64,000 bases of DNA from Auanema rhodensis (taxonomy: Eukaryota; Animalia; Nematoda), in assembly GCA_964057225.1 (NCBI GenBank), contig OZ059897.1, positions 6,820,001-6,884,000 on the forward strand, in the 5' to 3' direction. Positions 18,360 to 62,965 of this stretch are shown piece after piece. The translations under genes and the position numbers were made by a program. The notes below the pieces were generated by a model. That model was not told where the DNA came from and made no database searches. It saw only the letters and a list, made by a program, of their open reading frames with translations. The first letter of the stretch is position 1, and each line of letters begins with the position of its first letter.

Positions 18360-18725
18360 TGATAAGCTTGTTCATCATAAAGATCAAACTAATATTTTTA
18401 AAAAAGATCACAAGATTAAAAAATACAAAGCAATATATTTGAATATATTATTCGAACTTAGTGATAATACAATTGATATGAATGTATATGATGTGTGTAT
18501 ATCCAAAAATTAATATAAATATACATATATATCTTCCTATAGTAAAGTTATAACATACAAAGTTCGGATGTGATGTACTATCTGGAGGCTTATGTTTCTG
18601 TTAAACGTTAAAACCAATTAGCTAATCTAATATACTAGATGCAAGATTAGATAGCAGTTGAGATTTCTATACTACTGATATCATGCAATTTTTATCAAAA
18701 CATATTCTAAGATGAGTATATATAC
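18360..18725 (+). promoter_or_regulatory. Putative intestinal-type promoter of lysA (GATA sites plus TATA-like element)
   Basis: TGATAA at 18360 and 18462, TTATCA at 18692, TATATATA at about 18717; ATG at 18775. Confidence 0.45.
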
Positions 18726-18774
18726 CAAAGTTTGAAGCTAGCTATTAACAAGCTGTCATACTTTGTTCTAAACA

Positions 18775-19784
18775 ATGAAACTCTTCATCTTGGTCAACTT
18801 CATCCTTATCGGATATGCCGCAGCTCAGGTATTTCCATTCTTCTCAGCTTCTTTCTTATTCATTTTTAATATTTCAGTATAAGATACAAGGAATTGATAT
18901 TAAACAACCAGTAACAGAAGCACAGGTTCGCTGTTTAAAAGCTGAGAATGTCATCTCGCTTTACATCAGGTTACTTCGTAGTTAAAGATTTTTCATTCGA
19001 ACTGATGTTGCTTTCAGAGCTTATATGTCTTTGAATGGGGGAATGTTCGACCACAATGCTTGTGCTAGTTACAAAAGTTCTTCCCAATGTAAGATTTTCA
19101 TGTTTTACCTGAACAACCACCACTGCTCTTCGTAGTCTGAAAAGGAAAAATGAAAAATTGAAAAACGCGCACTTTCTTACAGATGCTATTACTCATGTGT
19201 ACATGGACCCAGCTCCTATTGGATCGAAGACTGGAAAAGATCAGATTGAAGAGATGTTTACCGGATTAGCCAAATGTAGTTTAGATTCTTACATCAAATT
19301 CTTCTGGATTTCGGTAGAAAACCCATAGCAATTGATGAGAAATTATGTAATTCAGGTTGTATCTCCATCTATTTGGAGTCATAATAGCAATCAGAATCTC
19401 AACTTTATCAAAGACTTGGTTAGAACTTCTGAAGCAAAGGTATAGAACTTTCAATGTCAATTCGGATTTTTTTTATTAAGAATGTTTCTATCGGAATTTA
19501 TACCAATGAACATGATTGGAATGCTATTACTGGAAGTGCCAATCATACTATATTAACCACCGGAACAGAGCCCATTGCATTATGGTATTTCTTACAATTT
19601 TCAAATTTAATTTAATTTTAACTATTTGAGGTATGCTAATGCTCCTCAGTCTGGAGAAGCCGCTCAGAATTTGGACAACTTCAAGCCTTTTGGTGGATGG
19701 GAATCAAAATTGGTTAACACAGTACAGTATGCTAAGAGTGCAACTGTTTGTAAAATTTCTTGTAACAAGGATTTCTTTGTATAA
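18775..19784 (+). CDS. Protist-type (GH25-related) lysozyme, lys-1/2/7/8-like ('lysA', parental copy), 7 exons
   Basis: Signal peptide MKLFILVNFILIGYAAA; motifs GIDI..PV...QV.CLK, YIR|AY...GG.FD.N, VYMDP, K.GKDQI.EM, FWIS|VVSP..W, IGIYTNEHDW..ITG, LW|Y, NFKPFGGW, VQY and CNKDF*. Confidence 0.93.
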
Positions 19785-20767
19785 TTTTTATTATACATAT
19801 ATTCATTTGAAAAAAAATATTATTATTTAAATAAAAGTTATTTTGTTCTTTATTCTTGTAAATTTTTCTAATAATTTTACGAAATCACAATTATAAATGT
19901 AACATTTATTGAAATTAGTTTATCTTTTCAATGTAGAGACGGTTTTCATGGTATACTGTAATGATACAGTACATCACTCTTGTCCAGTTTTGCGAGTTGC
20001 CAACCTATGATATACTGGTTCGGGTAGAAAGGTTAAAAAAGTTTTTAAAAGTAATTAGAATATTCTATCTATCATCTGGATATAGCTTTGAAATGATAAT
20101 TTCCTTAAAAAAATCGTTCTCAACAATATTTTTACTCATTTTTTCTATTTATGTGGCGTTCAAATTTAAATTTTTCATTTAACAAACTTTTAAAATCTAA
20201 AACATATTTTAAAATAGAAAAATACTCATTCAACATATTAATCATGTAAAGCAAATATTGTAAAAACATTGAGATCTAATATCATTAGTTATACTTAAAG
20301 CATGTTCTACAGCATGTATGAAATTGAAATTTAATTTTTGATTGTAAACAAATAAAATCGGTTGCTTCTTACTTTGATGTCAACACACAAATTATACATT
20401 AATAATACAAATGAACATATTTAATAAACAAGACAATATCCTGACAAAAAGAAAACAATGGTTTGAATTAATAAATCCAATTTTAGATAATCAATCTGTA
20501 AAGATTGATTTTTTTTGCGATAAGAAGAGTGTTGCAACTAACTGTTTTCCGTTATCACAGAATGAGGAAGAGATTGCAGAGTGAATAGAAATATGATATA
20601 CGAGAGACAGAGAGAAAGAAAGAGGGAGAAAGAGAGAAAGAAAGAGGGCGAAAGAGAAGAAAATAATTTTTGTCTCTAAAAATTGTTCTGAAAACCGAAG
20701 GAAAATTATAATCAATTCCCAATAAATTGTCACTCTCTGTCATTTTACCTAGAAATTCTCTTTAAAA

Positions 20768-21788
20768 ATGCGGCTTTTCGCACTCTGTTGCATCTTGGTA
20801 GGCATAGCTAAAGCGAAGGTATTTTTTTTACAAATATCAGTTGTTTTTTATAATTTTTAAAAATGTTTTAGGATCCTTTTCAACAAGAAATTGATATTAA
20901 ACAGCCTATAACTCAAGCACAGGTAAATTGCCTAAAAGCCAACAATATCTCCACTGTTTATGCCAGGTATTTCCAGAAATGAAAAATTGCTATAAACTAA
21001 ACATTTGAGAGCCTACACCTCAGCAAATGGTGGAATGTTTGATTATAACATCTGTAACACCTACAAAGCCGTGAGCCAGAGTATGTATTACTTGTTCTTT
21101 CATCAAAGATAAAACCGATTAGCATCTTATGAACGAGATAAATAATCATTACAAATGTTGTATTACAGCTAATATATTTCCTGATCTTTACATGGAACCT
21201 TCTGTTAGTGGAGGAAAAACAGCTAAAGATCAATTCAACGAGATGTATTCAGGTTTAACTAGTCCACAATGTAATTACCATGCAAACTATTTTTGGCTTT
21301 GGGTATACAACTCTATCGTATGTGCCAATGTATCATTCACTTTATAGGTTGTATCTCCGCAAAATTGGAAGAAAGATCCAACAGTTAATGTGCGGTTTAT
21401 CAAAGATATTATTGATGCTGCTTTGGCTAAAGTGAGAAACTTGAGTTTGAACTTGAGCGTTTATATTATTTTGTTTTCAGTTGGTTTTTGTAGGCATCTA
21501 TACAAATGAAAATGATTGGAAAACTATAACTCAAAACACTGACCATCATGAACTGGGAGCTGGTCGTTATCCATATGGATTATGGTATCTTGTAGATTAA
21601 ATTATTTTAGTTTTACTTATATTATTTTCAGGTTAGCAAATGGTACAAAAAGCGGACAAGATCCACATAGTTTAAATGGATTTAATCCTTTTGGTGGATT
21701 CACAATTAATGATATTTGTTCTGTACAATATTCCCAAAACGAAAATATTTGTGGAATAGCTTGTAATAGAGATTTTGGTCCAAGCTAA
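20768..21788 (+). CDS. Second protist-type lysozyme paralog ('lysB', the only complete copy), 7 exons
   Basis: Signal peptide MRLFALCCILVGIAKA; same exon structure and motifs as lysA (EIDIKQP, YAR|AY, LYMEP, FWLW|VVSP, VGIYTNENDW, FNPFGGF, CGIACNRDF). Confidence 0.92.
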
Positions 21789-22347
21789 GTGAACTGTCTC
21801 ATAGTTTACGGATTTAAATTGAAATCCAACAACTTTCATATGTAGATTTTGAACATAAAGCTGATGTAGACCACTATATTCTTTTTTTTCTCCATTTGAT
21901 TGCTTAATCACTTATTGGTTTCTCAGATCCAATAGTGTAGATTTAGAGTTTGTGCTGTTTAGAATAGAATTCTATCCTCTACGGGTAATATTCTAAGTCA
22001 AAATCTAACTTATACAGTTTGGTTTCTAATGTAAACCATTTGAAGATTGTCATTTCGACCGGAAAAGCATTAAATGAAGCAGTTGAGCTTTTAAAAACTA
22101 AGAAAATACAGTTTTGAATCTATATTATATCATATTCATATTTTTATATTAGAAAATAAGGAGAGATGTCGAAATCATAGGTCTTCTCTGACTCACTGCA
22201 ACCTGGTACAAGAGGGACCGACAATGGAGAAGCTTCCAGACAACCTCATAAACCATTAATTGCTGGCAAACAAGCATAACACGAGTTGTAACACAACCAA
22301 TGAGCTATTGAAAAGAAATGGTCCAACACCAACATATTAATGGTTGA

Positions 22348-22516
22348 ACTGTTAAGAAAGCGAAATGATTCAACGAGAATGAACTTGATAAACACCATTT
22401 TACGTATGTATATGACTAGTTAAACCTGAATACATCTCGTTGAATTGATCTTTAACTGTTTTTCCTCCACTAACAGAAGGTTCCATGTAAAGATTAGGGC
22501 TCAACTTTGTAGATCA
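22348..22516. repeat. 169-bp junction element X (7 direct copies: 22348, 27187, 28239, 32493, 33545, 38384, 39436) containing an inverted 85-bp piece of lysB exon 4
   Basis: actgttaagaaagcg...tttgtagatca recurs. 22414-22498 is the reverse complement of 21180-21264 with 2 mismatches. Confidence 0.93.
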
Positions 22517-22598
22517 AACAAAAGCAAAAAATTATTTATTAAATATAACAAAGATAGAAGAATCACCATATACATCAATCGTACATGTGTATTTGGAA

Positions 22599-24600
22599 TT
22601 ACTGCAATTCTTCTTTTATTTTAACTCCATCATGATTATCATCGACATCAGCTTCTGTATCTTCTGAAAATTGAACTTCTTTTTTAACTTTAAAAGAAAA
22701 AATTCTCACCTGCTTCTTCTTCTCTTTTAAATCTTTGATAAGTTGCTCCAACATTGGCAATGAAAATAGGTTTCATTTCATCAAAACTGTTATAATTAGT
22801 AACATTATCACCAATTGTAAGTTGATAAGTAAGCCCTTGATGAGAAAATTCTTCTGAAAATTAACTTTCTTTTACTGCAATCACATAACACTTACTTTCA
22901 TAATCTATAATATATTGTATAGCATCTTCTATATGTTCGAAACCTTTTAAATTCTTGCGAGAAAATCTAGTAGTCTGTTGTTCAGCGGTAGCCCAGCTTG
23001 TGAAGACTCCCATTTTTTTACCATGAGCAACAGCATAATAGTTTTTTAGTACATTTTTGTTTAATTTAGCCATTTCTTCTGTTATTTCTTCAATTTCTAT
23101 TGGTTCCTATAATATTTTGAAAACTAAAAAATTATCCAACAAAGACTAACCTTCTGAATATCATCAGTTAAACTCGAATCTTCTTTTTTCTTTTCCGAAG
23201 AGATTTCATTGGCATCATGATTATCATCGACATCAGCTTCTGTATCTTCTGAAAATTGAACTTCTTTTTTAACTTTAAAAGAAAAAATTCTCACCTGCTT
23301 CTTCTTCTCTTTTAAATCTTTGATAAGTTGCTCCAACATTGGCAATGAAAATAGGTTTCATTTCATCAAAACTGTTATAATTAGTAACATTATCACCAAT
23401 TGTAAGTTGATAAGTAAGCCCTTGATGAGAAAATTCTTCTGAAAATTAACTTTCTTTTACTGCAATCACATAACACTTACTTTCATAATCTATAATATAT
23501 TGTATAGCATCTTCTATATGTTCGAAACCTTTTAAATTCTTGCGAGAAAATCTAGTAGTCTGTTGTTCAGCGGTAGCCCAGCTTGTGAAGACTCCCATTT
23601 TTTTACCATGAGCAACAGCATAATAGTTTTTTAGTACATTTTTGTTTAATTTAGCCATTTTTTCTGTTATTTCTTCAATTTCTATTGGTTCCTATAATAT
23701 TTTGAAAACTAAAAAATTATCCAACAAAGACTAACCTTCTGAATATCATCAGTTAAACTCGAATCTTCTTTTTTCTTTTCCGAAGAGATTTCATTGGCAT
23801 CATGATTATCATCGACATCAGCTTCTGTATCTTCTGAAAATTGAACTTCTTTTTTAACTTTAAAAGAAAAAATTCTCACCTGCTTCTTCTTCTCTTTTAA
23901 ATCTTTGATAAGTTGCTCCAACATTGGCAATGAAAATAGGTTTCATTTCATCAAAACTGTTATAATTAGTAACATTATCACCAATTGTAAGTTGATAAGT
24001 AAGCCCTTGATGAGAAAATTCTTCTGAAAATTAACTTTCTTTTACTGCAATCACATAACACTTACTTTCATATTCTGTAATATATTGTATAGCATCTTCT
24101 ATATGTTCGAAACCCTTGAATTTATTGTGAGGAAATCCAGTAGTCTGTTGTTCAGCGGTAGCCCAGCTTGTGAAGACTCCCAATTTTCTACCAACAGCAA
24201 CAGCAAAATAGTTTTTTGGTACATTTTTGTTTAATTTAGCCATTTCTTCTGTTATTTCTTCAATTTCTATTGGTTCCTATAATATTTTGAAAACTAAAAA
24301 ATTATCCAACAAAGACTAACCTTCTGAATATCATCAGTTATCTTTTCCGAAGAGATTTCAGGAAAATTGTGAGTTTTGCTTGATTCAGTCCTTGCGTCTC
24401 GGCTAAAAAAAAGAAATAGTTTAATATAATTTAATTATAATAAAGCAAATCACAAAGAATAATTGATGTAATCGCACGATATGGGAAAACTTTCAAATTT
24501 CTACAATTAGTGAAAACTGTTAACGACTAGTAGTACCAGCTTCTTCTGACAAATACGTTACTTTCATACCCTTATATACAAAAGAAAATTCTAATTTCAT
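22599..24600 (-). CDS. Tandem RNase H1 hybrid-binding-domain (Cauli_VI) protein, copy 1: 3 HBDs, about 489 aa, no catalytic RNase H domain
   Basis: NYFAVAVGRKLGVFTSWATAEQQTTGFPHNKFKGFEHIEDAIQYI matches the HBD pattern YAV..GR..GVF.TW......Q...FP...FK.F. Each 585-bp unit has 3 exons (211+144+98 = 453 nt, 151 aa, frame preserved) and 3 GT-AG introns (42, 46, 44 nt). Ends DGVKIKEELQ* with AATAAA about 60 nt downstream. The first two small exons are less certain. Confidence 0.82.
22628..24340. repeat. 585-bp intragenic tandem repeat, about 3 units (also 28519-29646, about 2 units; 33825-35537, about 3 units)
   Basis: ORFs at 22861/23446/24031, 28752/29337 and 34058/34643/35228 are spaced exactly 585 bp apart. 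Confidence 0.97.
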
Positions 24601-24835
24601 ATAGTTCTTTTGAGAATTGATAAAGAATGAGTCGGATTGAGCTTGAATTCAAGATGAATATATAAGAAATATAAGACGAGGAGAGCTATCATGGGCGGTA
24701 CAATAACAATGATGCCTATAGCGCGAATGTCAGCTTTAAGTATATGAGGTGGGTGGTTCTAGAAGGTGCGAATGTATGAAACTCCTACCACATGACGTCA
24801 TGCTTCCAGACGGTTCCCTAAGAAATTATGAAATT

Positions 24836-24950
24836 GATTTAAAAGAGAAGAAGAAGCAGGTGAGAATTTTTTCTTTTAAAGTTAAAAAAGAAGTTCAATT
24901 TTCAGAAGATACAGAAGCTGATGTCGATGATAATCATGATGGAGTTAAAA
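24836..24950 (+). repeat. 115-bp inverted copy of the HBD gene 3' end (22619-22733), including an intron; also at 30142 and 36033
   Basis: gatttaaaagagaag...catgatggagttaaaa is the reverse complement of 22619-22733 and carries the terminal-unit-specific GGAGTTAAAA. Confidence 0.93.
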
Positions 24951-24952
24951 AG

Positions 24953-27160
24953 TTTCAGAACAATTTTTAGAGACAAAAATTATTTTCTTCTCTTTCGCCC
25001 TCTTTCTTTCTCTCTGTCTCTCGTATATCATATTTCTATTCACTCTGCAATCTCTTCCTCATTCTGTGATAACGGAAAACAGTTAGTTGCAACACTCTTC
25101 TTATCGCAAAAAAAATCAATCTTTACAGATTGATTATCTAAAATTGGATTTATTAATTCAAACCATTGTTTTCTTTTTGTCAGGATATTGTCTTGTTTAT
25201 TAAATATGTTCATTTGTATTATTAATGTATAATTTGTGTGTTGACATCAAAGTAAGAAGCAACCGATTTTATTTGTTTACAATCAAAAATTAAATTTCAA
25301 TTTCATACATGCTGTAGAACATGCTTTAAGTATAACTAATGATATTAGATCTCAATGTTTTTACAATATTTGCTTTACATGATTAATATGTTGAATGAGT
25401 ATTTTTCTATTTTAAAATATGTTTTAGATTTTAAAAGTTTGTTAAATGAAAAATTTAAATTTGAACGCCACATAAATAGAAAAAATGAGTAAAAATATTG
25501 TTGAGAACGATTTTTTTAAGGAAATTATCATTTCAAAGCTATATCCAGATGATAGATAGAATATTCTAATTACTTTTAAAAACTTTTTTAACCTTTCTAC
25601 CCGAACCAGTATATCATAGGTTGGCAACTCGCAAAACTGGACAAGAGTGATGTACTGTATCATTACAGTATACCATGAAAACCGTCTCTACATTGAAAAG
25701 ATAAACTAATTTCAATAAATGTTACATTTATAATTGTGATTTCGTAAAATTATTAGAAAAATTTACAAGAATAAAGAACAAAATAACTTTTATTTAAATA
25801 ATAATATTTTTTTTCAAATGAATATATGTATAATAAAAATTATACAAAGAAATCCTTGTTACAAGAAATTTTACAAACAGTTGCACTCTTAGCATACTGT
25901 ACTGTGTTAACCAATTTTGATTCCCATCCACCAAAAGGCTTGAAGTTGTCCAAATTCTGAGCGGCTTCTCCAGACTGAGGAGCATTAGCATACCTCAAAT
26001 AGTTAAAATTAAATTAAATTTGAAAATTGTAAGAAATACCATAATGCAATGGGCTCTGTTCCGGTGGTTAATATAGTATGATTGGCACTTCCAGTAATAG
26101 CATTCCAATCATGTTCATTGGTATAAATTCCGATAGAAACATTCTTAATAAAAAAAATCCGAATTGACATTGAAAGTTCTATACCTTTGCTTCAGAAGTT
26201 CTAACCAAGTCTTTGATAAAGTTGAGATTCTGATTGCTATTATGACTCCAAATAGATGGAGATACAACCTGAATTACATAATTTCTCATCAATTGCTATG
26301 GGTTTTCTACCGAAATCCAGAAGAATTTGATGTAAGAATCTAAACTACATTTGGCTAATCCGGTAAACATCTCTTCAATCTGATCTTTTCCAGTCTTCGA
26401 TCCAATAGGAGCTGGGTCCATGTACACATGAGTAATAGCATCTGTAAGAAAGTGCGCGTTTTTCAATTTTTCATTTTTCCTTTTCAGACTACGAAGAGCA
26501 GTGGTGGTTGTTCAGGTAAAACATGAAAATCTTACATTGGGAAGAACTTTTGTAACTAGCACAAGCATTGTGGTCGAACATTCCCCCATTCAAAGACATA
26601 TAAGCTCTGAAAGCAACATCAGTTCGAATGAAAAATCTTTAACTACGAAGTAACCTGATGTAAAGCGAGATGACATTCTCAGCTTTTAAACAGCGAACCT
26701 GTGCTTCTGTTACTGGTTGTTTAATATCAATTCCTTGTATCTTATACTGAAATATTAAAAATGAATAAGAAAGAAGCTGAGAAGAATGGAAATACCTGAG
26801 CTGCGGCATATCCGATAAGGATGAAGTTGACCAAGATGAAGAGTTTCATTGTTTAGAACAAAGTATGACAGCTTGTTAATAGCTAGCTTCAAACTTTGGT
26901 ATATATACTCATCTTAGAATATGTTTTGATAAAAATTGCATGATATCAGTAGTATAGAAATCTCAACTGCTATCTAATCTTGCATCTAGTATATTAGATT
27001 AGCTAATTGGTTTTAACGTTTAACAGAAACATAAGCCTCCAGATAGTACATCACATCCGAACTTTGTATGTTATAACTTTACTATAGGAAGATATATATG
27101 TATATATATATTAATTTTTGGATATACACACATCATATACATTCATATCAATTGTATTAT
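24953..27160 (-). repeat. Inverted duplication of 18464-20693 (lysA with 311 bp upstream and about 900 bp downstream); further copies at 30259-32466 and 36150-38357
   Basis: Reverse-complement match to the parental block. Differences seen: a 22-bp deletion in a GA-rich tract and one SNP in an AT run. Confidence 0.96.
25840..26849 (-). CDS. lysA lysozyme, inverted intact copy 2
   Basis: Reverse complement of 18775-19784; ATG, splice sites and stop preserved. Confidence 0.9.
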
Positions 27161-27371
27161 TAATGTATAATTTCATTTGTTAAGTGACTGTTAAGAAAGC
27201 GAAATGATTCAACGAGAATGAACTTGATAAACACCATTTTACGTATGTATATGACTAGTTAAACCTGAATACATCTCGTTGAATTGATCTTTAACTGTTT
27301 TTCCTCCACTAACAGAAGGTTCCATGTAAAGATTAGGGCTCAACTTTGTAGATCATTTCCTTTTTATAAAG

Positions 27372-27679
27372 TTGGTTTTTGTAGGCATCTATACCAATGA
27401 AAATGATTGGAAAACTATAACTCAAAACACTGACCATCATGAACTGGGAGCTGGTCGTTATCCATATGGATTATGGTATCTTGTAGATTAAATTATTTTA
27501 GTTTTACTTATATTATTTTCAGGTTAGCAAATGGTACAAAAAGCGGACAAGATCCACATAGTTTAAATGGATTTAATCCTTTTGGTGGATTCACAATTAA
27601 TGATATTTGTTCTGTACAATATTCCCAAAACGAAAATATTTGTGGAATAGCTTGTAATAGAGATTTTGGTCCAAGCTAA
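27372..27679 (+). pseudogene. 5'-truncated lysB (exons 6-7 only)
   Basis: Matches 21481-21788 (one synonymous SNP seen); no upstream exons. Confidence 0.85.
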
Positions 27680-28489
27680 GTGAACTGTCTCATAGTTTAC
27701 GGATTTAAATTGAAATCCAACAACTTTCATATGTAGATTTTGAACATAAAGCTGATGTAGACCACTATATTCTTTTTTTTCTCCATTTGATTGCTTAATC
27801 ACTTATTGGTTTCTCAGATCCAATAGTGTAGATTTAGAGTTTGTGCTGTTTAGAATAGAATTCTATCCTCTACGGGTAATATTCTAAGTCAAAATCTAAC
27901 TTATACAGTTTGGTTTCTAATGTAAACCATTTGAAGATTGTCATTTCGACCGGAAAAGCATTAAATGAAGCAGTTGAGCTTTTAAAAACTAAGAAAATAC
28001 AGTTTTGAATCTATATTATATCATATTCATATTTTTATATTAGAAAATAAGGAGAGATGTCGAAATCATAGGTCTTCTCTGACTCACTGCAACCTGGTAC
28101 AAGAGGGACCGACAATGGAGAAGCTTCCAGACAACCTCATAAACCATTAATTGCTGGCAAACAAGCATAACACGAGTTGTAACACAACCAATGAGCTATT
28201 GAAAAGAAATGGTCCAACACCAACATATTAATGGTTGAACTGTTAAGAAAGCGAAATGATTCAACGAGAATGAACTTGATAAACACCATTTTACGTATGT
28301 ATATGACTAGTTAAACCTGAATACATCTCGTTGAATTGATCTTTAACTGTTTTTCCTCCACTAACAGAAGGTTCCATGTAAAGATTAGGGCTCAACTTTG
28401 TAGATCAAACAAAAGCAAAAAATTATTTATTAAATATAACAAAGATAGAAGAATCACCATATACATCAATCGTACATGTGTATTTGGAA

Positions 28490-29906
28490 TTACTGCAATT
28501 CTTCTTTTATTTTAACTCCATCATGATTATCATCGACATCAGCTTCTGTATCTTCTGAAAATTGAACTTCTTTTTTAACTTTAAAAGAAAAAATTCTCAC
28601 CTGCTTCTTCTTCTCTTTTAAATCTTTGATAAGTTGCTCCAACATTGGCAATGAAAATAGGTTTCATTTCATCAAAACTGTTATAATTAGTAACATTATC
28701 ACCAATTGTAAGTTGATAAGTAAGCCCTTGATGAGAAAATTCTTCTGAAAATTAACTTTCTTTTACTGCAATCACATAACACTTACCTTCATAATCTATA
28801 ATATATTGTATAGCATCTTCTATATGTTCGAAACCTTTTAAATTCTTGCGAGAAAATCTAGTAGTCTGTTGTTCAGCGGTAGCCCAGCTTGTGAAGACTC
28901 CCATTTTTTTACCATGAGCAACAGCATAATAGTTTTTTAGTACATTTTTGTTTAATTTAGCCATTTTTTCTGTTATTTCTTCAATTTCTATTGGTTCCTA
29001 TAATATTTTGAAAACTAAAAAATTATCCAACAAAGACTAACCTTCTGAATATCATCAGTTAAACTCGAATCTTCTTTTTTCTTTTCCGAAGAGATTTCAT
29101 TGGCATCATGATTATCATCGACATCAGCTTCTGTATCTTCTGAAAATTGAACTTCTTTTTTAACTTTAAAAGAAAAAATTCTCACCTGCTTCTTCTTCTC
29201 TTTTAAATCTTTGATAAGTTGCTCCAACATTGGCAATGAAAATAGGTTTCATTTCATCAAAACTGTTATAATTAGTAACATTATCACCAATTGTAAGTTG
29301 ATAAGTAAGCCCTTGATGAGAAAATTCTTCTGAAAATTAACTTTCTTTTACTGCAATCACATAACACTTACTTTCATATTCTGTAATATATTGTATAGCA
29401 TCTTCTATATGTTCGAAACCCTTGAATTTATTGTGAGGAAATCCAGTAGTCTGTTGTTCAGCGGTAGCCCAGCTTGTGAAGACTCCCAATTTTCTACCAA
29501 CAGCAACAGCAAAATAGTTTTTTGGTACATTTTTGTTTAATTTAGCCATTTCTTCTGTTATTTCTTCAATTTCTATTGGTTCCTATAATATTTTGAAAAC
29601 TAAAAAATTATCCAACAAAGACTAACCTTCTGAATATCATCAGTTATCTTTTCCGAAGAGATTTCAGGAAAATTGTGAGTTTTGCTTGATTCAGTCCTTG
29701 CGTCTCGGCTAAAAAAAAGAAATAGTTTAATATAATTTAATTATAATAAAGCAAATCACAAAGAATAATTGATGTAATCGCACGATATGGGAAAACTTTC
29801 AAATTTCTACAATTAGTGAAAACTGTTAACGACTAGTAGTACCAGCTTCTTCTGACAAATACGTTACTTTCATACCCTTATATACAAAAGAAAATTCTAA
29901 TTTCAT
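28490..29906 (-). CDS. Tandem HBD (Cauli_VI) protein, copy 2: 2 HBDs, about 338 aa
   Basis: As copy 1 minus one 585-bp unit; frame intact. Confidence 0.8.
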
Positions 29907-31145
29907 ATAGTTCTTTTGAGAATTGATAAAGAATGAGTCGGATTGAGCTTGAATTCAAGATGAATATATAAGAAATATAAGACGAGGAGAGCTATCATGG
30001 GCGGTACAATAACAATGATGCCTATAGCGCGAATGTCAGCTTTAAGTATATGAGGTGGGTGGTTCTAGAAGGTGCGAATGTATGAAACTCCTACCACATG
30101 ACGTCATGCTTCCAGACGGTTCCCTAAGAAATTATGAAATTGATTTAAAAGAGAAGAAGAAGCAGGTGAGAATTTTTTCTTTTAAAGTTAAAAAAGAAGT
30201 TCAATTTTCAGAAGATACAGAAGCTGATGTCGATGATAATCATGATGGAGTTAAAAAGTTTCAGAACAATTTTTAGAGACAAAAATTATTTTCTTCTCTT
30301 TCGCCCTCTTTCTTTCTCTCTGTCTCTCGTATATCATATTTCTATTCACTCTGCAATCTCTTCCTCATTCTGTGATAACGGAAAACAGTTAGTTGCAACA
30401 CTCTTCTTATCGCAAAAAAAATCAATCTTTACAGATTGATTATCTAAAATTGGATTTATTAATTCAAACCATTGTTTTCTTTTTGTCAGGATATTGTCTT
30501 GTTTATTAAATATGTTCATTTGTATTATTAATGTATAATTTGTGTGTTGACATCAAAGTAAGAAGCAACCGATTTTATTTGTTTACAATCAAAAATTAAA
30601 TTTCAATTTCATACATGCTGTAGAACATGCTTTAAGTATAACTAATGATATTAGATCTCAATGTTTTTACAATATTTGCTTTACATGATTAATATGTTGA
30701 ATGAGTATTTTTCTATTTTAAAATATGTTTTAGATTTTAAAAGTTTGTTAAATGAAAAATTTAAATTTGAACGCCACATAAATAGAAAAAATGAGTAAAA
30801 ATATTGTTGAGAACGATTTTTTTAAGGAAATTATCATTTCAAAGCTATATCCAGATGATAGATAGAATATTCTAATTACTTTTAAAAACTTTTTTAACCT
30901 TTCTACCCGAACCAGTATATCATAGGTTGGCAACTCGCAAAACTGGACAAGAGTGATGTACTGTATCATTACAGTATACCATGAAAACCGTCTCTACATT
31001 GAAAAGATAAACTAATTTCAATAAATGTTACATTTATAATTGTGATTTCGTAAAATTATTAGAAAAATTTACAAGAATAAAGAACAAAATAACTTTTATT
31101 TAAATAATAATATTTTTTTTCAAATGAATATATGTATAATAAAAA

Positions 31146-32155
31146 TTATACAAAGAAATCCTTGTTACAAGAAATTTTACAAACAGTTGCACTCTTAGCA
31201 TACTGTACTGTGTTAACCAATTTTGATTCCCATCCACCAAAAGGCTTGAAGTTGTCCAAATTCTGAGCGGCTTCTCCAGACTGAGGAGCATTAGCATACC
31301 TCAAATAGTTAAAATTAAATTAAATTTGAAAATTGTAAGAAATACCATAATGCAATGGGCTCTGTTCCGGTGGTTAATATAGTATGATTGGCACTTCCAG
31401 TAATAGCATTCCAATCATGTTCATTGGTATAAATTCCGATAGAAACATTCTTAATAAAAAAAATCCGAATTGACATTGAAAGTTCTATACCTTTGCTTCA
31501 GAAGTTCTAACCAAGTCTTTGATAAAGTTGAGATTCTGATTGCTATTATGACTCCAAATAGATGGAGATACAACCTGAATTACATAATTTCTCATCAATT
31601 GCTATGGGTTTTCTACCGAAATCCAGAAGAATTTGATGTAAGAATCTAAACTACATTTGGCTAATCCGGTAAACATCTCTTCAATCTGATCTTTTCCAGT
31701 CTTCGATCCAATAGGAGCTGGGTCCATGTACACATGAGTAATAGCATCTGTAAGAAAGTGCGCGTTTTTCAATTTTTCATTTTTCCTTTTCAGACTACGA
31801 AGAGCAGTGGTGGTTGTTCAGGTAAAACATGAAAATCTTACATTGGGAAGAACTTTTGTAACTAGCACAAGCATTGTGGTCGAACATTCCCCCATTCAAA
31901 GACATATAAGCTCTGAAAGCAACATCAGTTCGAATGAAAAATCTTTAACTACGAAGTAACCTGATGTAAAGCGAGATGACATTCTCAGCTTTTAAACAGC
32001 GAACCTGTGCTTCTGTTACTGGTTGTTTAATATCAATTCCTTGTATCTTATACTGAAATATTAAAAATGAATAAGAAAGAAGCTGAGAAGAATGGAAATA
32101 CCTGAGCTGCGGCATATCCGATAAGGATGAAGTTGACCAAGATGAAGAGTTTCAT
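31146..32155 (-). CDS. lysA lysozyme, inverted intact copy 3
   Basis: Same sequence as 25840-26849 at +5306. Confidence 0.9.
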
Positions 32156-32677
32156 TGTTTAGAACAAAGTATGACAGCTTGTTAATAGCTAGCTTCAAAC
32201 TTTGGTATATATACTCATCTTAGAATATGTTTTGATAAAAATTGCATGATATCAGTAGTATAGAAATCTCAACTGCTATCTAATCTTGCATCTAGTATAT
32301 TAGATTAGCTAATTGGTTTTAACGTTTAACAGAAACATAAGCCTCCAGATAGTACATCACATCCGAACTTTGTATGTTATAACTTTACTATAGGAAGATA
32401 TATATGTATATATATATTAATTTTTGGATATACACACATCATATACATTCATATCAATTGTATTATTAATGTATAATTTCATTTGTTAAGTGACTGTTAA
32501 GAAAGCGAAATGATTCAACGAGAATGAACTTGATAAACACCATTTTACGTATGTATATGACTAGTTAAACCTGAATACATCTCGTTGAATTGATCTTTAA
32601 CTGTTTTTCCTCCACTAACAGAAGGTTCCATGTAAAGATTAGGGCTCAACTTTGTAGATCATTTCCTTTTTATAAAG

Positions 32678-32985
32678 TTGGTTTTTGTAGGCATCTATAC
32701 CAATGAAAATGATTGGAAAACTATAACTCAAAACACTGACCATCATGAACTGGGAGCTGGTCGTTATCCATATGGATTATGGTATCTTGTAGATTAAATT
32801 ATTTTAGTTTTACTTATATTATTTTCAGGTTAGCAAATGGTACAAAAAGCGGACAAGATCCACATAGTTTAAATGGATTTAATCCTTTTGGTGGATTCAC
32901 AATTAATGATATTTGTTCTGTACAATATTCCCAAAACGAAAATATTTGTGGAATAGCTTGTAATAGAGATTTTGGTCCAAGCTAA
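32678..32985 (+). pseudogene. 5'-truncated lysB (exons 6-7 only)
   Basis: Same as 27372-27679. Confidence 0.85.
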
Positions 32986-33795
32986 GTGAACTGTCTCATA
33001 GTTTACGGATTTAAATTGAAATCCAACAACTTTCATATGTAGATTTTGAACATAAAGCTGATGTAGACCACTATATTCTTTTTTTTCTCCATTTGATTGC
33101 TTAATCACTTATTGGTTTCTCAGATCCAATAGTGTAGATTTAGAGTTTGTGCTGTTTAGAATAGAATTCTATCCTCTACGGGTAATATTCTAAGTCAAAA
33201 TCTAACTTATACAGTTTGGTTTCTAATGTAAACCATTTGAAGATTGTCATTTCGACCGGAAAAGCATTAAATGAAGCAGTTGAGCTTTTAAAAACTAAGA
33301 AAATACAGTTTTGAATCTATATTATATCATATTCATATTTTTATATTAGAAAATAAGGAGAGATGTCGAAATCATAGGTCTTCTCTGACTCACTGCAACC
33401 TGGTACAAGAGGGACCGACAATGGAGAAGCTTCCAGACAACCTCATAAACCATTAATTGCTGGCAAACAAGCATAACACGAGTTGTAACACAACCAATGA
33501 GCTATTGAAAAGAAATGGTCCAACACCAACATATTAATGGTTGAACTGTTAAGAAAGCGAAATGATTCAACGAGAATGAACTTGATAAACACCATTTTAC
33601 GTATGTATATGACTAGTTAAACCTGAATACATCTCGTTGAATTGATCTTTAACTGTTTTTCCTCCACTAACAGAAGGTTCCATGTAAAGATTAGGGCTCA
33701 ACTTTGTAGATCAAACAAAAGCAAAAAATTATTTATTAAATATAACAAAGATAGAAGAATCACCATATACATCAATCGTACATGTGTATTTGGAA

Positions 33796-35797
33796 TTACT
33801 GCAATTCTTCTTTTATTTTAACTCCATCATGATTATCATCGACATCAGCTTCTGTATCTTCTGAAAATTGAACTTCTTTTTTAACTTTAAAAGAAAAAAT
33901 TCTCACCTGCTTCTTCTTCTCTTTTAAATCTTTGATAAGTTGCTCCAACATTGGCAATGAAAATAGGTTTCATTTCATCAAAACTGTTATAATTAGTAAC
34001 ATTATCACCAATTGTAAGTTGATAAGTAAGCCCTTGATGAGAAAATTCTTCTGAAAATTAACTTTCTTTTACTGCAATCACATAACACTTACTTTCATAT
34101 TCTGTAATATATTGTATAGCATCTTCTATATGTTCGAAACCTTTTAAATTCTTGCGAGAAAATCTAGTAGTCTGTTGTTCAGCGGTAGCCCAGCTTGTGA
34201 AGACTCCCATTTTTTTACCATGAGCAACAGCATAATAGTTTTTTAGTACATTTTTGTTTAATTTAGCCATTTTTTCTGTTATTTCTTCAATTTCTATTGG
34301 TTCCTATAATATTTTGAAAACTAAAAAATTATCCAACAAAGACTAACCTTCTGAATATCATCAGTTAAACTCGAATCTTCTTTTTTCTTTTCCGAAGAGA
34401 TTTCATTGGCATCATGATTATCATCGACATCAGCTTCTGTATCTTCTGAAAATTGAACTTCTTTTTTAACTTTAAAAGAAAAAATTCTCACCTGCTTCTT
34501 CTTCTCTTTTAAATCTTTGATAAGTTGCTCCAACATTGGCAATGAAAATAGGTTTCATTTCATCAAAACTGTTATAATTAGTAACATTATCACCAATTGT
34601 AAGTTGATAAGTAAGCCCTTGATGAGAAAATTCTTCTGAAAATTAACTTTCTTTTACTGCAATCACATAACACTTACTTTCATATTCTGTAATATATTGT
34701 ATAGCATCTTCTATATGTTCGAAACCTTTTAAATTCTTGCGAGAAAATCTAGTAGTCTGTTGTTCAGCGGTAGCCCAGCTTGTGAAGACTCCCATTTTTT
34801 TACCATGAGCAACAGCATAATAGTTTTTTAGTACATTTTTGTTTAATTTAGCCATTTTTTCTGTTATTTCTTCAATTTCTATTGGTTCCTATAATATTTT
34901 GAAAACTAAAAAATTATCCAACAAAGACTAACCTTCTGAATATCATCAGTTAAACTCGAATCTTCTTTTTTCTTTTCCGAAGAGATTTCATTGGCATCAT
35001 GATTATCATCGACATCAGCTTCTGTATCTTCTGAAAATTGAACTTCTTTTTTAACTTTAAAAGAAAAAATTCTCACCTGCTTCTTCTTCTCTTTTAAATC
35101 TTTGATAAGTTGCTCCAACATTGGCAATGAAAATAGGTTTCATTTCATCAAAACTGTTATAATTAGTAACATTATCACCAATTGTAAGTTGATAAGTAAG
35201 CCCTTGATGAGAAAATTCTTCTGAAAATTAACTTTCTTTTACTGCAATCACATAACACTTACTTTCATATTCTGTAATATATTGTATAGCATCTTCTATA
35301 TGTTCGAAACCCTTGAATTTATTGTGAGGAAATCCAGTAGTCTGTTGTTCAGCGGTAGCCCAGCTTGTGAAGACTCCCAATTTTCTACCAACAGCAACAG
35401 CAAAATAGTTTTTTGGTACATTTTTGTTTAATTTAGCCATTTCTTCTGTTATTTCTTCAATTTCTATTGGTTCCTATAATATTTTGAAAACTAAAAAATT
35501 ATCCAACAAAGACTAACCTTCTGAATATCATCAGTTATCTTTTCCGAAGAGATTTCAGGAAAATTGTGAGTTTTGCTTGATTCAGTCCTTGCGTCTCGGC
35601 TAAAAAAAAGAAATAGTTTAATATAATTTAATTATAATAAAGCAAATCACAAAGAATAATTGATGTAATCGCACGATATGGGAAAACTTTCAAATTTCTA
35701 CAATTAGTGAAAACTGTTAACGACTAGTAGTACCAGCTTCTTCTGACAAATACGTTACTTTCATACCCTTATATACAAAAGAAAATTCTAATTTCAT
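33796..35797 (-). CDS. Tandem HBD (Cauli_VI) protein, copy 3: 3 HBDs, with chimeric second and third units
   Basis: Same structure as copy 1; the B-type units end ITEYE instead of IIDYE. Confidence 0.8.
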
Positions 35798-37036
35798 ATA
35801 GTTCTTTTGAGAATTGATAAAGAATGAGTCGGATTGAGCTTGAATTCAAGATGAATATATAAGAAATATAAGACGAGGAGAGCTATCATGGGCGGTACAA
35901 TAACAATGATGCCTATAGCGCGAATGTCAGCTTTAAGTATATGAGGTGGGTGGTTCTAGAAGGTGCGAATGTATGAAACTCCTACCACATGACGTCATGC
36001 TTCCAGACGGTTCCCTAAGAAATTATGAAATTGATTTAAAAGAGAAGAAGAAGCAGGTGAGAATTTTTTCTTTTAAAGTTAAAAAAGAAGTTCAATTTTC
36101 AGAAGATACAGAAGCTGATGTCGATGATAATCATGATGGAGTTAAAAAGTTTCAGAACAATTTTTAGAGACAAAAATTATTTTCTTCTCTTTCGCCCTCT
36201 TTCTTTCTCTCTGTCTCTCGTATATCATATTTCTATTCACTCTGCAATCTCTTCCTCATTCTGTGATAACGGAAAACAGTTAGTTGCAACACTCTTCTTA
36301 TCGCAAAAAAAATCAATCTTTACAGATTGATTATCTAAAATTGGATTTATTAATTCAAACCATTGTTTTCTTTTTGTCAGGATATTGTCTTGTTTATTAA
36401 ATATGTTCATTTGTATTATTAATGTATAATTTGTGTGTTGACATCAAAGTAAGAAGCAACCGATTTTATTTGTTTACAATCAAAAATTAAATTTCAATTT
36501 CATACATGCTGTAGAACATGCTTTAAGTATAACTAATGATATTAGATCTCAATGTTTTTACAATATTTGCTTTACATGATTAATATGTTGAATGAGTATT
36601 TTTCTATTTTAAAATATGTTTTAGATTTTAAAAGTTTGTTAAATGAAAAATTTAAATTTGAACGCCACATAAATAGAAAAAATGAGTAAAAATATTGTTG
36701 AGAACGATTTTTTTAAGGAAATTATCATTTCAAAGCTATATCCAGATGATAGATAGAATATTCTAATTACTTTTAAAAACTTTTTTAACCTTTCTACCCG
36801 AACCAGTATATCATAGGTTGGCAACTCGCAAAACTGGACAAGAGTGATGTACTGTATCATTACAGTATACCATGAAAACCGTCTCTACATTGAAAAGATA
36901 AACTAATTTCAATAAATGTTACATTTATAATTGTGATTTCGTAAAATTATTAGAAAAATTTACAAGAATAAAGAACAAAATAACTTTTATTTAAATAATA
37001 ATATTTTTTTTCAAATGAATATATGTATAATAAAAA

Positions 37037-38046
37037 TTATACAAAGAAATCCTTGTTACAAGAAATTTTACAAACAGTTGCACTCTTAGCATACTGTACT
37101 GTGTTAACCAATTTTGATTCCCATCCACCAAAAGGCTTGAAGTTGTCCAAATTCTGAGCGGCTTCTCCAGACTGAGGAGCATTAGCATACCTCAAATAGT
37201 TAAAATTAAATTAAATTTGAAAATTGTAAGAAATACCATAATGCAATGGGCTCTGTTCCGGTGGTTAATATAGTATGATTGGCACTTCCAGTAATAGCAT
37301 TCCAATCATGTTCATTGGTATAAATTCCGATAGAAACATTCTTAATAAAAAAAATCCGAATTGACATTGAAAGTTCTATACCTTTGCTTCAGAAGTTCTA
37401 ACCAAGTCTTTGATAAAGTTGAGATTCTGATTGCTATTATGACTCCAAATAGATGGAGATACAACCTGAATTACATAATTTCTCATCAATTGCTATGGGT
37501 TTTCTACCGAAATCCAGAAGAATTTGATGTAAGAATCTAAACTACATTTGGCTAATCCGGTAAACATCTCTTCAATCTGATCTTTTCCAGTCTTCGATCC
37601 AATAGGAGCTGGGTCCATGTACACATGAGTAATAGCATCTGTAAGAAAGTGCGCGTTTTTCAATTTTTCATTTTTCCTTTTCAGACTACGAAGAGCAGTG
37701 GTGGTTGTTCAGGTAAAACATGAAAATCTTACATTGGGAAGAACTTTTGTAACTAGCACAAGCATTGTGGTCGAACATTCCCCCATTCAAAGACATATAA
37801 GCTCTGAAAGCAACATCAGTTCGAATGAAAAATCTTTAACTACGAAGTAACCTGATGTAAAGCGAGATGACATTCTCAGCTTTTAAACAGCGAACCTGTG
37901 CTTCTGTTACTGGTTGTTTAATATCAATTCCTTGTATCTTATACTGAAATATTAAAAATGAATAAGAAAGAAGCTGAGAAGAATGGAAATACCTGAGCTG
38001 CGGCATATCCGATAAGGATGAAGTTGACCAAGATGAAGAGTTTCAT
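37037..38046 (-). CDS. lysA lysozyme, inverted intact copy 4
   Basis: Same sequence as 31146-32155 at +5891. Confidence 0.9.
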
Positions 38047-38568
38047 TGTTTAGAACAAAGTATGACAGCTTGTTAATAGCTAGCTTCAAACTTTGGTATA
38101 TATACTCATCTTAGAATATGTTTTGATAAAAATTGCATGATATCAGTAGTATAGAAATCTCAACTGCTATCTAATCTTGCATCTAGTATATTAGATTAGC
38201 TAATTGGTTTTAACGTTTAACAGAAACATAAGCCTCCAGATAGTACATCACATCCGAACTTTGTATGTTATAACTTTACTATAGGAAGATATATATGTAT
38301 ATATATATTAATTTTTGGATATACACACATCATATACATTCATATCAATTGTATTATTAATGTATAATTTCATTTGTTAAGTGACTGTTAAGAAAGCGAA
38401 ATGATTCAACGAGAATGAACTTGATAAACACCATTTTACGTATGTATATGACTAGTTAAACCTGAATACATCTCGTTGAATTGATCTTTAACTGTTTTTC
38501 CTCCACTAACAGAAGGTTCCATGTAAAGATTAGGGCTCAACTTTGTAGATCATTTCCTTTTTATAAAG

Positions 38569-38876
38569 TTGGTTTTTGTAGGCATCTATACCAATGAAAA
38601 TGATTGGAAAACTATAACTCAAAACACTGACCATCATGAACTGGGAGCTGGTCGTTATCCATATGGATTATGGTATCTTGTAGATTAAATTATTTTAGTT
38701 TTACTTATATTATTTTCAGGTTAGCAAATGGTACAAAAAGCGGACAAGATCCACATAGTTTAAATGGATTTAATCCTTTTGGTGGATTCACAATTAATGA
38801 TATTTGTTCTGTACAATATTCCCAAAACGAAAATATTTGTGGAATAGCTTGTAATAGAGATTTTGGTCCAAGCTAA
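38569..38876 (+). pseudogene. 5'-truncated lysB (exons 6-7 only)
   Basis: Same as 27372-27679. Confidence 0.85.
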
Positions 38877-39620
38877 GTGAACTGTCTCATAGTTTACGGA
38901 TTTAAATTGAAATCCAACAACTTTCATATGTAGATTTTGAACATAAAGCTGATGTAGACCACTATATTCTTTTTTTTCTCCATTTGATTGCTTAATCACT
39001 TATTGGTTTCTCAGATCCAATAGTGTAGATTTAGAGTTTGTGCTGTTTAGAATAGAATTCTATCCTCTACGGGTAATATTCTAAGTCAAAATCTAACTTA
39101 TACAGTTTGGTTTCTAATGTAAACCATTTGAAGATTGTCATTTCGACCGGAAAAGCATTAAATGAAGCAGTTGAGCTTTTAAAAACTAAGAAAATACAGT
39201 TTTGAATCTATATTATATCATATTCATATTTTTATATTAGAAAATAAGGAGAGATGTCGAAATCATAGGTCTTCTCTGACTCACTGCAACCTGGTACAAG
39301 AGGGACCGACAATGGAGAAGCTTCCAGACAACCTCATAAACCATTAATTGCTGGCAAACAAGCATAACACGAGTTGTAACACAACCAATGAGCTATTGAA
39401 AAGAAATGGTCCAACACCAACATATTAATGGTTGAACTGTTAAGAAAGCGAAATGATTCAACGAGAATGAACTTGATAAACACCATTTTACGTATGTATA
39501 TGACTAGTTAAACCTGAATACATCTCGTTGAATTGATCTTTAACTGTTTTTCCTCCACTAACAGAAGGTTCCATGTAAAGATTAGGGCTCAACTTTGTAG
39601 ATCATTTCCTTTTTATAAAG

Positions 39621-41430: not shown

Positions 41431-41440
41431 CTCTCTCTCT

Positions 41441-41480
<40 letters not shown>
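41431..41480 (+). repeat. (CT)n microsatellite; similar tracts at 1417-1443, 42012-42051, 44817-44866, 45749-45800, 60652-60688 and 62821-62889
   Basis: Dinucleotide runs visible directly. Confidence 0.95.
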
Positions 41481-41483
<3 letters not shown>

Positions 41484-42008: not shown

Positions 42009-42054
<46 letters not shown>

Positions 42055-45744: not shown

Positions 45745-45776
<32 letters not shown>

Positions 45777-60655: not shown

Positions 60656-60688
<33 letters not shown>

Positions 60689-62817: not shown

Positions 62818-62865
<48 letters not shown>

Positions 62866-62965
62866 CTCTCTCTCTCTCTCTCTCTCTCTAATTTGCATTC
62901 TCTCCATCCATCATTTTTTCTTTTCTTTTCTTCATTTTTATATTTTTTTTGATTCCTGGAGATAG

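Follow-up and report, generated by a model that had tools for sequence, protein, structure and literature searches.

A spliced gene of repeated RNase H1-type hybrid-binding domains without a nuclease domain in a recently duplicated nematode locus

The window analyzed here, a 64-kb stretch of nematode DNA, contains a tandem segmental duplication in which each cassette carries one copy of a gene built from repeated hybrid-binding domains (HBDs), together with a lysozyme-like gene (Table 1). The copies of the HBD-repeat gene together comprise 8 units of 585 bp (at 22628, 23213, 23798, 28519, 29104, 33825, 34410, and 34995), which are 99–100% alike, and the cassettes are spaced 5891/5306/5891. The two genes had been described as co-amplified, and both do lie inside the duplicated block. 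The near-identity of the cassettes indicates that the amplification is very recent. All cassettes also hold a short inverted piece of the HBD-repeat gene, 434 nt upstream of the upstream exon (exon U).

Table 1. Features of the duplicated locus (positions within the window)
Feature	Position	Strand	Remarks
Tandem segmental duplication	21479–39604		~3.2 cassettes of 5.3–5.9 kb; cassette identity 99.7–99.9%
HBD-repeat gene, copy 1	22599–24402	−	3 units, 430 aa
HBD-repeat gene, copy 2	28490–29708	−	2 units, 279 aa
HBD-repeat gene, copy 3	33796–35599	−	3 units, 430 aa
Copy 1, exon U	24402–24321	−	RNA contigs terminate at its AG acceptor
Copy 1, unit 1 exons	A 24276–24066, B 24023–23880, C 23833–23736	−	A: unit-1 type, acidic lead-in and canonical Cauli_VI/HBD; B: 47-aa module, identical in 8/8 units; C: acidic linker, net charge −9
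Copy 1, unit 2 exons	A 23691–23481, B 23438–23295, C 23248–23151	−	A: unit-2 type, canonical HBD variant
Copy 1, unit 3 exons	A 23106–22896, B 22853–22710, terminal exon 22663–22599	−	
Copy 1, first in-frame ATG	24243	−	yields 430 aa
Copy 1, stop TAA	22601–22599	−	
Presumed 3′ UTR with AATAAA	22535–22598	−	conserved with 3′ end of C3 paralog
Copy 2 exons	29708–29627, 29582–29372, 29329–29186, 29139–29042, 28997–28787, 28744–28601, 28554–28490	−	
Lysozyme-like gene	25840–26849	−	7 exons and signal peptide, read by eye
Further lysozyme-like copies	+5306 and +11197 relative to 25840–26849		
Extra inverted copy	within 18464–20639		lysozyme-like segment
Inverted piece of HBD-repeat gene	24836–24950	+	exon B end, next intron, and terminal exon start; 100% identical

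The short minus-strand open reading frames in this region had been proposed to be exons of one gene per cassette, with three canonical introns removed per 585-bp unit to leave 453 nt (151 aa), and this is what we find. All three copies splice in frame and stay open to one terminal stop. They have nine, six, and nine introns, respectively, every one of them GT-AG and 44, 42, or 46 nt long, and a spliced unit joins exons A, B, and C (211 + 144 + 98 = 453 nt). We compared the HBD-repeat gene, and this gene only, with assembled RNA contigs from four runs (X1–X4), all of one study. In these contigs the exons are joined, and the skips of 44, 46, and 42 nt match the predicted introns exactly; the 44-nt intron between exon U and exon A is skipped as well. 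The splice borders read CT..AC on the plus strand, and the joints of copy 2 are present. Contig depths are ~300–1400, and the gene appears to be abundantly expressed.

The RNA settles the first exon only in part: the joint between exons U and A was seen, but the contigs end at the acceptor of exon U and the 5′ end is missing. Neither transcript end was found in the contigs of the four runs, and contigs of this gene do not cover its terminal exon or 3′ UTR. Exon U contains no ATG; in frame, the first one (MAKLNKN) lies inside exon A, and a 7-codon uORF crosses the junction between the two exons. Exon U is probably a 5′ leader reached via trans-splicing, and the start codon and 3′ end in Table 1 are predictions. 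The stop and AATAAA described previously are both present, and their support comes from a degenerate, expressed paralog on another contig (C3), located within a palindromic SL1 gene cluster, which has lost most of its HBD and shares the conserved stop and 3′ UTR. In exon C, the first part of the terminal exon appears to have been fused to the last part of exon U.

The three copies could also be read as one giant read-through gene of eight units, with a CA/GTAATT donor in the terminal exon spliced to exon U of the next copy. The frame would be preserved, exon U of the window resembles the internal type and has no ATG, and the RNA shows the homologous CG/GTAATT of the C3 paralog joined to a U-type exon. 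However, the intron would be ~4.1 kb long and would contain the lysozyme-like gene, which lies on the same strand and has a poly(A) signal of its own, the exon U contigs never enter terminal-exon sequence (0/4 runs), and AATAAA comes after the stop. We consider a read-through gene very unlikely and describe one gene per cassette.

Each 151-aa unit was said to contain a Cauli_VI domain, and exon A gives a full-length match to this Pfam family (PF01693) in 8/8 units. The match covers profile positions 2–44 of 44, with scores of 54.6 and 49.9 bits (cut-off 21) and E-values of 1.3e-14 (unit-1 type) and 3.7e-13 (unit-2 type); in a six-frame search of the genome, all eight copies of exon A exceed the cut-off. 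Exon A also matches the HBD structures of human (3BSU) and yeast (1QHK). In the human domain, Y29, W43, F58, K59, and K60 are nucleic-acid contact residues. Relative to 3BSU, the unit-1 type keeps W43, F58, and K59 and carries Y29F, R52G, and K60G, while the unit-2 type keeps Y29, W43, R52, and K59 and carries F58L and K60G. Thus, Lys60 is replaced by Gly in 8/8 canonical HBDs and Phe58 by Leu in 5/8, with Trp43, Lys59, and an aromatic residue at position 29 retained. In the human HBD, W43A or KK59/60AA abolishes binding (PMC10639055). The canonical HBDs are nearly neutral, with charges of 0 to +2, versus a strongly basic human HBD by our own count on the 3BSU alignment.

The two unit types differ at 16 nucleotides, all of which fall in exon A and 15 of which are non-synonymous. 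If differences were spread evenly across the 585 bp, the chance of finding 16/16 in the HBD exon would be ~8e-8. Seven of them lie within 24 nt, in the loop aligned to human residues 52–58. In units 2 and 3 of copy 3, ITEYE replaces IIDYE.

A Pfam search of exons B and C returned zero matches, and the preliminary description had listed exon B as a 47-aa module beside the HBD. Our results point to a second, divergent HBD. Alignment by hhalign against 323 HBD segments places exon B in register with HBDs (columns 10–48 versus 6–44) at a probability of 86.7% and P of 4.4e-6, and its HMM score of 10.2 bits was exceeded by 2 of 2000 shuffles. AlphaFold modeling of exon B with an HBD alignment gave a β-β-α-β topology with a core pLDDT of ~86; this model depends on that alignment, which was chosen by the analyst, and single-sequence AlphaFold gave a hairpin and one long helix only. 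For the guided model, 3BSU was among the best structural matches (TM 0.59–0.67), with non-significant E-values. By profile and model, exon B is a predicted distant and divergent member of the HBD fold. The earlier count of two to three tandem HBDs per gene therefore holds for the canonical domains but not for HBD-like folds in total, which number four to six with exon B.

The encoded proteins have a pI of ~4.8, and the net charge over the whole protein is −34. Neither a signal peptide nor an enzyme domain is present in the HBD-repeat protein. The predicted protein is soluble and very acidic, with two or three repeats of an acidic lead-in, a canonical HBD, a divergent HBD-like fold, and an acidic linker. 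A profile search for the RNase H catalytic domain (PF00075) found no match in the 64-kb window, which agrees with the earlier reading, and a stop with AATAAA after it marks the end of the gene. The only RNase_H matches of the genome are at C5:5477684–5478271 (C5:5.478 Mb), 1.34 Mb from the window, and adjoin its only other Cauli_VI match.

The eukaryotic RNase H1 HBD is similar to the worm domain in its length of ~44 aa and in Trp43, Lys59, and the aromatic residue at 29, but in the worm gene no catalytic domain follows, Lys60 is Gly, and the HBDs are almost uncharged. The HBD occupies a single exon in the repeat gene, whereas it is split by an intron in the genome's own RNase H1, to whose HBD it is ~39% identical by hand count. 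The preliminary description knew of no described nematode gene with this architecture. However, uncharacterized multi-Cauli_VI proteins exist in Phytophthora ramorum (H3H652, eight domains), P. idaei, Sanchytrium, Rozella (EPZ32932), and metagenomes, and like the worm gene they combine tandem HBDs with no PF00075. Multi-domain nuclease-free Cauli_VI proteins thus pre-exist in oomycetes and other eukaryotes, and the worm gene is a variant of them. It does not appear to be an ortholog: likeness to the oomycete-type proteins is within the HBD only, at 37–48% identity at most, and the linkers are unrelated. Those proteins repeat canonical HBDs, whereas the nematode gene, which repeats a cassette of three exons, alternates a canonical with a degenerate HBD and has long acidic linkers.

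A divergent HBD-like fold after a conserved HBD is also found in Drosophila RNase H1, where the conserved HBD has tight affinity for hybrid and a second, cryptic one lowers the binding strength and facilitates release (PMC7657459). The fly has one such pair on an active nuclease; in the worm, as known from sequence, the pair is repeated two to three times with no nuclease. In the nematode RNase H1-type entry KAK6047150 of Cooperia oncophora (170 aa), two HBDs are separated by ~13 residues, just as the canonical HBD and the exon B fold are in the worm protein. In Cooperia both HBDs are of the canonical type; the identity is 43%, and this record may represent part of an RNase H1 gene model. That the worm gene arose from such a two-HBD N-terminus is only a conjecture.

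The host is an SL1-bearing nematode, whose genome contains 3451 exact copies of the SL1 22-mer, and the HBD-repeat gene seems to be lineage-restricted. A search of 1.84 billion representative proteins turned up no relative with more than 48% identity. The gene's dN/dS is ~1.2 against the C3 paralog (1.7 for exon B), its only paralog and one short of most of its HBD, so no purifying selection is visible in this comparison. Together with the very recent amplification, these values would suit a young, fast-evolving duplicate of unsettled function, its expression being due to an inherited active promoter and its amplification to neutral unequal crossing-over. Against this, the frames are open and the splice sites perfect in 8/8 units and 3/3 copies, all four RNA runs give deep contigs, and confinement of the unit-type differences to the HBD exon is unlike neutral decay. 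We regard a young duplicate of unsettled function as quite improbable.

The neighboring gene proved hard to place. Its single exons had no match in Pfam, a six-frame search of the genome with PF01183 had none, and neither did a PDB sequence search. By eye, the GH25 D-x-E motif is missing, with FFWISVV presumably in its place; we take the gene to resemble C. elegans LYS proteins. The preliminary description suggested that the HBD gene and this lysozyme form a nucleic-acid-sensing defense module or a toxin-antidote-like selfish locus. The two genes are co-duplicated, and a piece of lysozyme is likewise found after the C3 paralog. Yet no functional, regulatory, or transcript link between them was seen, the RNA comparison being confined to the HBD gene. 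A lysozyme-like exon does occur in RNA, but its 97.6% identity and different flanks assign it to a paralog located elsewhere, and the gene itself has neither a family match nor a D-x-E motif. Co-duplication is accounted for by unequal recombination, because lysozyme-derived repeats lie at the cassette borders. The shared segmental duplication is probably the whole of the tie, and the lysozyme-like gene would be its passenger. No sequence feature suggests a toxin-antidote system, and we give the defense and selfish readings hardly any credence.

We favor, with moderate confidence, a role for this spliced, nuclease-free protein in multivalent binding and shielding of hybrid or dsRNA duplexes. 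Binding to R-loops or dsRNA is plausible. The targets of the canonical HBDs would be A-form or hybrid duplexes, mainly RNA:DNA hybrids, with weaker binding to dsRNA, and several HBDs per chain would provide avidity, as in RHINO. In RHINO, a live-cell sensor, three human HBDs were engineered into a tandem that binds R-loops specifically (PMC10639055). Like the worm protein, RHINO has several nuclease-free HBDs per chain, and its binding to RNA:DNA hybrids is specific and slower-exchanging; it is synthetic, with basic human HBDs and K59/K60 intact, whereas its worm counterpart occurs naturally, is acidic, and carries K60G. With no nuclease, the worm protein would occupy, shield, or compete for duplexes but would not remove them. 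The divergent HBD and acidic linkers may keep affinity and non-specific binding in check, much like the cryptic HBD in Drosophila RNase H1.

Alternatively, the HBD folds may have been re-used for protein binding, or as an acidic decoy or chaperone, with no nucleic-acid binding in vivo. The K60G change in all units, F58L in five, the near-neutral HBDs, and the net charge of −34 fit this view, and the human HBD has a known protein partner, P32 (PMC3750045). A changing protein partner could account equally well for the mostly non-synonymous unit-type differences, seven of which fall in loop 52–58. However, the domain still has Trp43, Lys59, the aromatic residue at 29, and its overall Cauli_VI signature, and multivalency can offset weak single-site affinity. 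We consider this alternative rather unlikely and prefer duplex binding.

As a bolder and rather doubtful extension of duplex binding, the protein could be a natural analogue of engineered multi-HBD R-loop sensors. It would be abundant and, having no nuclease, would read or shield RNA:DNA hybrids or dsRNA through multivalent binding. Its binding-surface loop would be diversifying between units, its dosage would have tripled recently, and it would act in genetic conflict with viruses, retroelements, or RNAi triggers, or antagonize RNase H1.

HBD-only proteins are in the databases, yet our limited literature search found no study of them, and the sole well-understood nuclease-free multi-HBD molecule it found is a laboratory sensor. 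An abundant natural version in an animal could reveal uses of hybrid and dsRNA binding that are uncoupled from cleavage, with protection, sequestration, and competition with RNase H1 as candidates. The worm HBDs could also provide new binding modules of altered specificity.

Eight 585-bp units lie in the window in groups of 3, 2, and 3, one group in each of three tandem cassettes (spaced 5891/5306/5891) that pair the HBD-repeat gene, named for its RNase H1 hybrid-binding domains (HBDs), with a lysozyme-like gene. The units are 99–100% identical over their last 300 nt, and the duplicated block as a whole is 99.7–99.9% identical, with an additional, inverted copy of the lysozyme-like segment. 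Each minus-strand unit comprises exons A, B, and C (211, 144, and 98 nt), with GT-AG introns of 42, 46, and 44 nt, and every gene copy also has an 82-nt upstream exon (U) and a 65-nt terminal exon. Splicing leaves the reading frame of each of the three copies open from U down to one TAA. The repeats, introns, and open frame thus bear out the minus-strand spliced gene with 585-bp units of the preliminary description, whose structural part is supported with the corrections described below. Each cassette also holds a 115-nt inverted repeat with 100% complementary arms. One arm covers the 3′ part of the HBD-repeat gene (end of exon B, intron, and terminal exon); the other lies 434 nt upstream of the first exon and is without any RNA contig. 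A 31-codon ORF, considered as an upstream coding exon, was rejected, as its stop precedes any usable donor. Downstream of the duplicated block are two regions in which several (TC)n microsatellites of 22–35 repeats occur and both GC skew and AT skew are strongly negative.

Positions of the HBD-repeat gene, its neighbors, and related loci (window coordinates unless a contig is named)
Feature	Position	Strand	Remark
HBD-repeat gene, copy 1	22599–24402	minus	3 units
HBD-repeat gene, copy 2	28490–29708	minus	2 units
HBD-repeat gene, copy 3	33796–35599	minus	3 units
First in-frame ATG	24243	minus	MAKLNKN
Seven-codon uORF	24243–24330	minus	ATGATATTCAGAAGGAACCAATAG
31-codon ORF	24597–24692		rejected as coding exon
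Inverted repeat arms	22619–22733; 24836–24950		same in other two cassettes
AG acceptor of exon U	29708–29710	minus	copy 2
Duplicated block	21479–39604
Lysozyme-like gene	25840–26849; 31146–32155; 37037–38046	minus	by eye
Lysozyme-like segment, inverted copy	18464–20639		gene copy lies within
Lysozyme fragment	28305–28389
(TC)n/skew regions	41430–45800; 60587–62889
Diverged HBD-repeat paralog	C3:14129287–14135237
SL1 array (example)	C3:6741531–6766485
Canonical RNase H1 gene	C5:5476184–5480208

RNA evidence consisted of contigs assembled from four runs (X1–X4) of a single study, in which roughly half the words sampled from the HBD-repeat gene were present. When contigs were aligned to copy 2, their exon joints coincided exactly with the predicted introns, with CT..AC ends on the plus strand and 44, 46, and 42 nt skipped. 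Exon repetition makes the 42-nt joint read as either "skips 627" or "goes back 542." The contigs likewise lack the 44-nt intron that separates U from exon A. These intron-less contigs show that the runs hold spliced RNA. Contig depth, which is a rough guide to abundance only, was ~300–1400 for the HBD-repeat gene versus 20–87 for a contig from a lysozyme paralog and 3–6 for unspliced upstream sequence.

We infer both transcript ends. In the runs listed with U-exon contigs (X1–X3), the high-depth contig stops at the AG acceptor of exon U, and in X3, it is followed by three letters without a genomic alignment. There are 3451 exact copies of the SL1 22-mer genome-wide, in tandem arrays with periods of ~252 and 341 bp, which marks a nematode genome with very large spliced-leader gene arrays. 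Given where the contig ends and the number of SL1 copies, the simplest reading is that trans-splicing at the U acceptor creates the putative 5′ start. At the other end, the terminal exon and 3′ UTR had no contigs of their own in the four runs, and contigs of exon A from unit 1 were missing in two. Contig building often drops short dead ends and minority branches, so the terminal-exon gap is no evidence of absence; both gaps are most likely dead ends or variant branches lost in assembly. A 58-letter loose end at the terminal exon in run X4 was considered as an alternative 3′ exon and rejected, as it belongs to the spliced mRNA from a paralog located on contig C3.

Tracing that loose end led to a diverged HBD-repeat paralog at ~14.131 Mb, at the center of two SL1 RNA gene arrays in opposed orientation, arranged about an inverted repeat of 99%. 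This paralog is degenerate and weakly expressed. Its HBD exon has an internal truncation, and its exon-B-like exon is 48% identical to exon B. The last copy ends in ELR-TAA; behind it come a 3′ UTR and an AATAAA with homology to the window's own, and then the same lysozyme fragment. This arrangement supports the stop and AATAAA originally assigned to the window gene. The paralog's U exon carries an ATG (MSDSSKTHH...), and comparison shows the window's exon U to be of the internal type. Since the window has AGG at this position, the first in-frame ATG is that of MAKLNKN, giving proteins of 430, 279, and 430 aa. The short uORF straddles the U/exon A junction directly before this ATG. The terminal-type exon of the paralog is joined in RNA, at CG/GTAATT, to an internal U-type exon, and the equivalent CA/GTAATT of the window could be spliced, with the frame kept, to exon U of the following copy, forming a single 8-unit gene. 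We regard this as a minor alternative to three separate genes, given the 4.1-kb gap between copies, the same-strand gene that intervenes, and where the contigs end.

Exons were submitted one by one to family, homology, and structure tools. Exon A is a full-length match to Pfam Cauli_VI (PF01693; E 1.3e-14 and 3.7e-13), and a protein-atlas search with it returned the same assignment and no more; exons B, C, and U had zero Pfam matches. Across the 181-Mb genome, Cauli_VI occurs at the eight window sites and at C5:5.4786 Mb, and nowhere else. The genome's sole matches to the RNase H catalytic domain (PF00075) share this ninth site, which is therefore the true RNase H1 gene and lies 1.34 Mb off. 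No nuclease domain was found within the window, in agreement with the preliminary description. An intron splits the HBD of this only canonical RNase H1 of the genome; the HBDs of the repeat gene are single-exon. An Rfam search of the whole window detected no RNA family.

Exon B, originally described as a 47-aa module, is itself HBD-like by HMM and hhalign. Many multi-HBD proteins have HBDs that align with it in register (Y-x-L-x-x-G ... Y-x-S-F-x-E ... G-A-x-Y-x-R-F-x-x-E-E-A). With an HMM made from 323 HBD segments, exon B scored 10.2 bits, exceeded by 2 of 2000 shuffles, and the C3 version 9.4 bits; hhalign aligned exon B to HBDs over the whole domain (probability 86.7%, P 4.4e-6). From the single sequence, AlphaFold gave a β-hairpin and long helix that are only partly HBD-like (pLDDT 73); guided by an HBD alignment, it gave β-β-α-β with a core pLDDT of ~86, a model that depends on the chosen alignment. 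Foldseek placed 3BSU, the human HBD, among the best matches to the 47-aa model (TM 0.59–0.67), with E not significant. We conclude that exon B is a divergent second HBD, such that each unit comprises a canonical HBD, an HBD-like fold ~13 residues on, and an acidic linker (exon C). A Cooperia protein has equal HBD-HBD spacing, but both of its HBDs are canonical. Drosophila RNase H1 also has a cryptic second HBD (PMC7657459).

Of the 585 nt, 16 distinguish unit 1 from unit 2. All of them lie inside the 210-nt HBD exon (chance if evenly spread, ~8e-8), and 15 of these differences are non-synonymous (pN 0.088, pS 0.025). Seven of the 16 map to a 24-nt stretch corresponding to the loop aligned to human residues 52–58, which in the 3BSU structure reportedly contacts the hybrid. 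Either gene conversion homogenizes the rest of the unit while two HBD types are held apart, or diversification of the HBD surface is under way. Comparison with the C3 paralog gave a pS of 0.16 and a dN/dS of ~1.2; therefore, the family is young, and purifying selection is not visible in that comparison, although simple decay of the paralog may account for this. In a set of 1.84 billion representative proteins, the best identity is ≤48%, and the top matches owe their rank solely to carrying many HBDs.

Aligned to 3BSU, all eight canonical domains keep Trp43 and Lys59 and have Gly in place of Lys60. The unit-1 type keeps Phe58 and has Phe for Tyr29; the unit-2 type has Leu for Phe58 and keeps Tyr29. 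In a 3xHBD sensor, W43A or KK59/60AA abolish hybrid binding (PMC10639055). Net charge is 0 to +2 for the canonical domains, −3 for exon B, −9 for the linker, and −34 for the 430-aa protein (pI 4.8). With contact residues partly lost and near-neutral domains in an acidic protein, nucleic-acid binding is plausible but not assured, and the earlier functional interpretation as a non-catalytic reader of hybrids or dsRNA is likewise plausible. A rival reading is that the protein binds protein instead, as the human HBD is known to do with P32 (PMC3750045).

The lysozyme-like gene, one per cassette, has by eye seven exons and a signal peptide, and each cassette also carries rearranged pieces of a second such gene. 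Its exons had no PDB sequence match, one exon had no match in the protein atlas, and no tool used assigned a family. GH25 lysozymes have a catalytic D-x-E; at its place, "KFFWISVV" is read by eye, and the gene may encode a dead enzyme. The sole lysozyme exon seen in RNA, in contigs of 650–910 nt, is 97.6% identical to the window's lysozyme fragment (A>G at 28346), with flanks unlike the window on both sides. It comes from an intact, expressed paralog elsewhere, and the window's own fragment is probably a dead remnant. Lysozyme-derived repeats on both sides of the HBD-repeat gene allow unequal recombination, which explains the co-duplication; nothing supported the proposed joint defense module or the toxin-antidote or selfish locus.

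Our literature search found no characterization of any multi-HBD nuclease-free protein and no description of a nematode gene of this kind. Nuclease-free multi-HBD "hypothetical proteins" are already in databases, from Phytophthora (H3H652, 8 domains), Sanchytrium, Rozella, and metagenomes; therefore, the architecture class is not new. Particular to the A. rhodensis gene are its units of alternating canonical and degenerate HBDs with acidic linkers, the three-exon cassette repeat, the high RNA contig depth, and the recent triplication.
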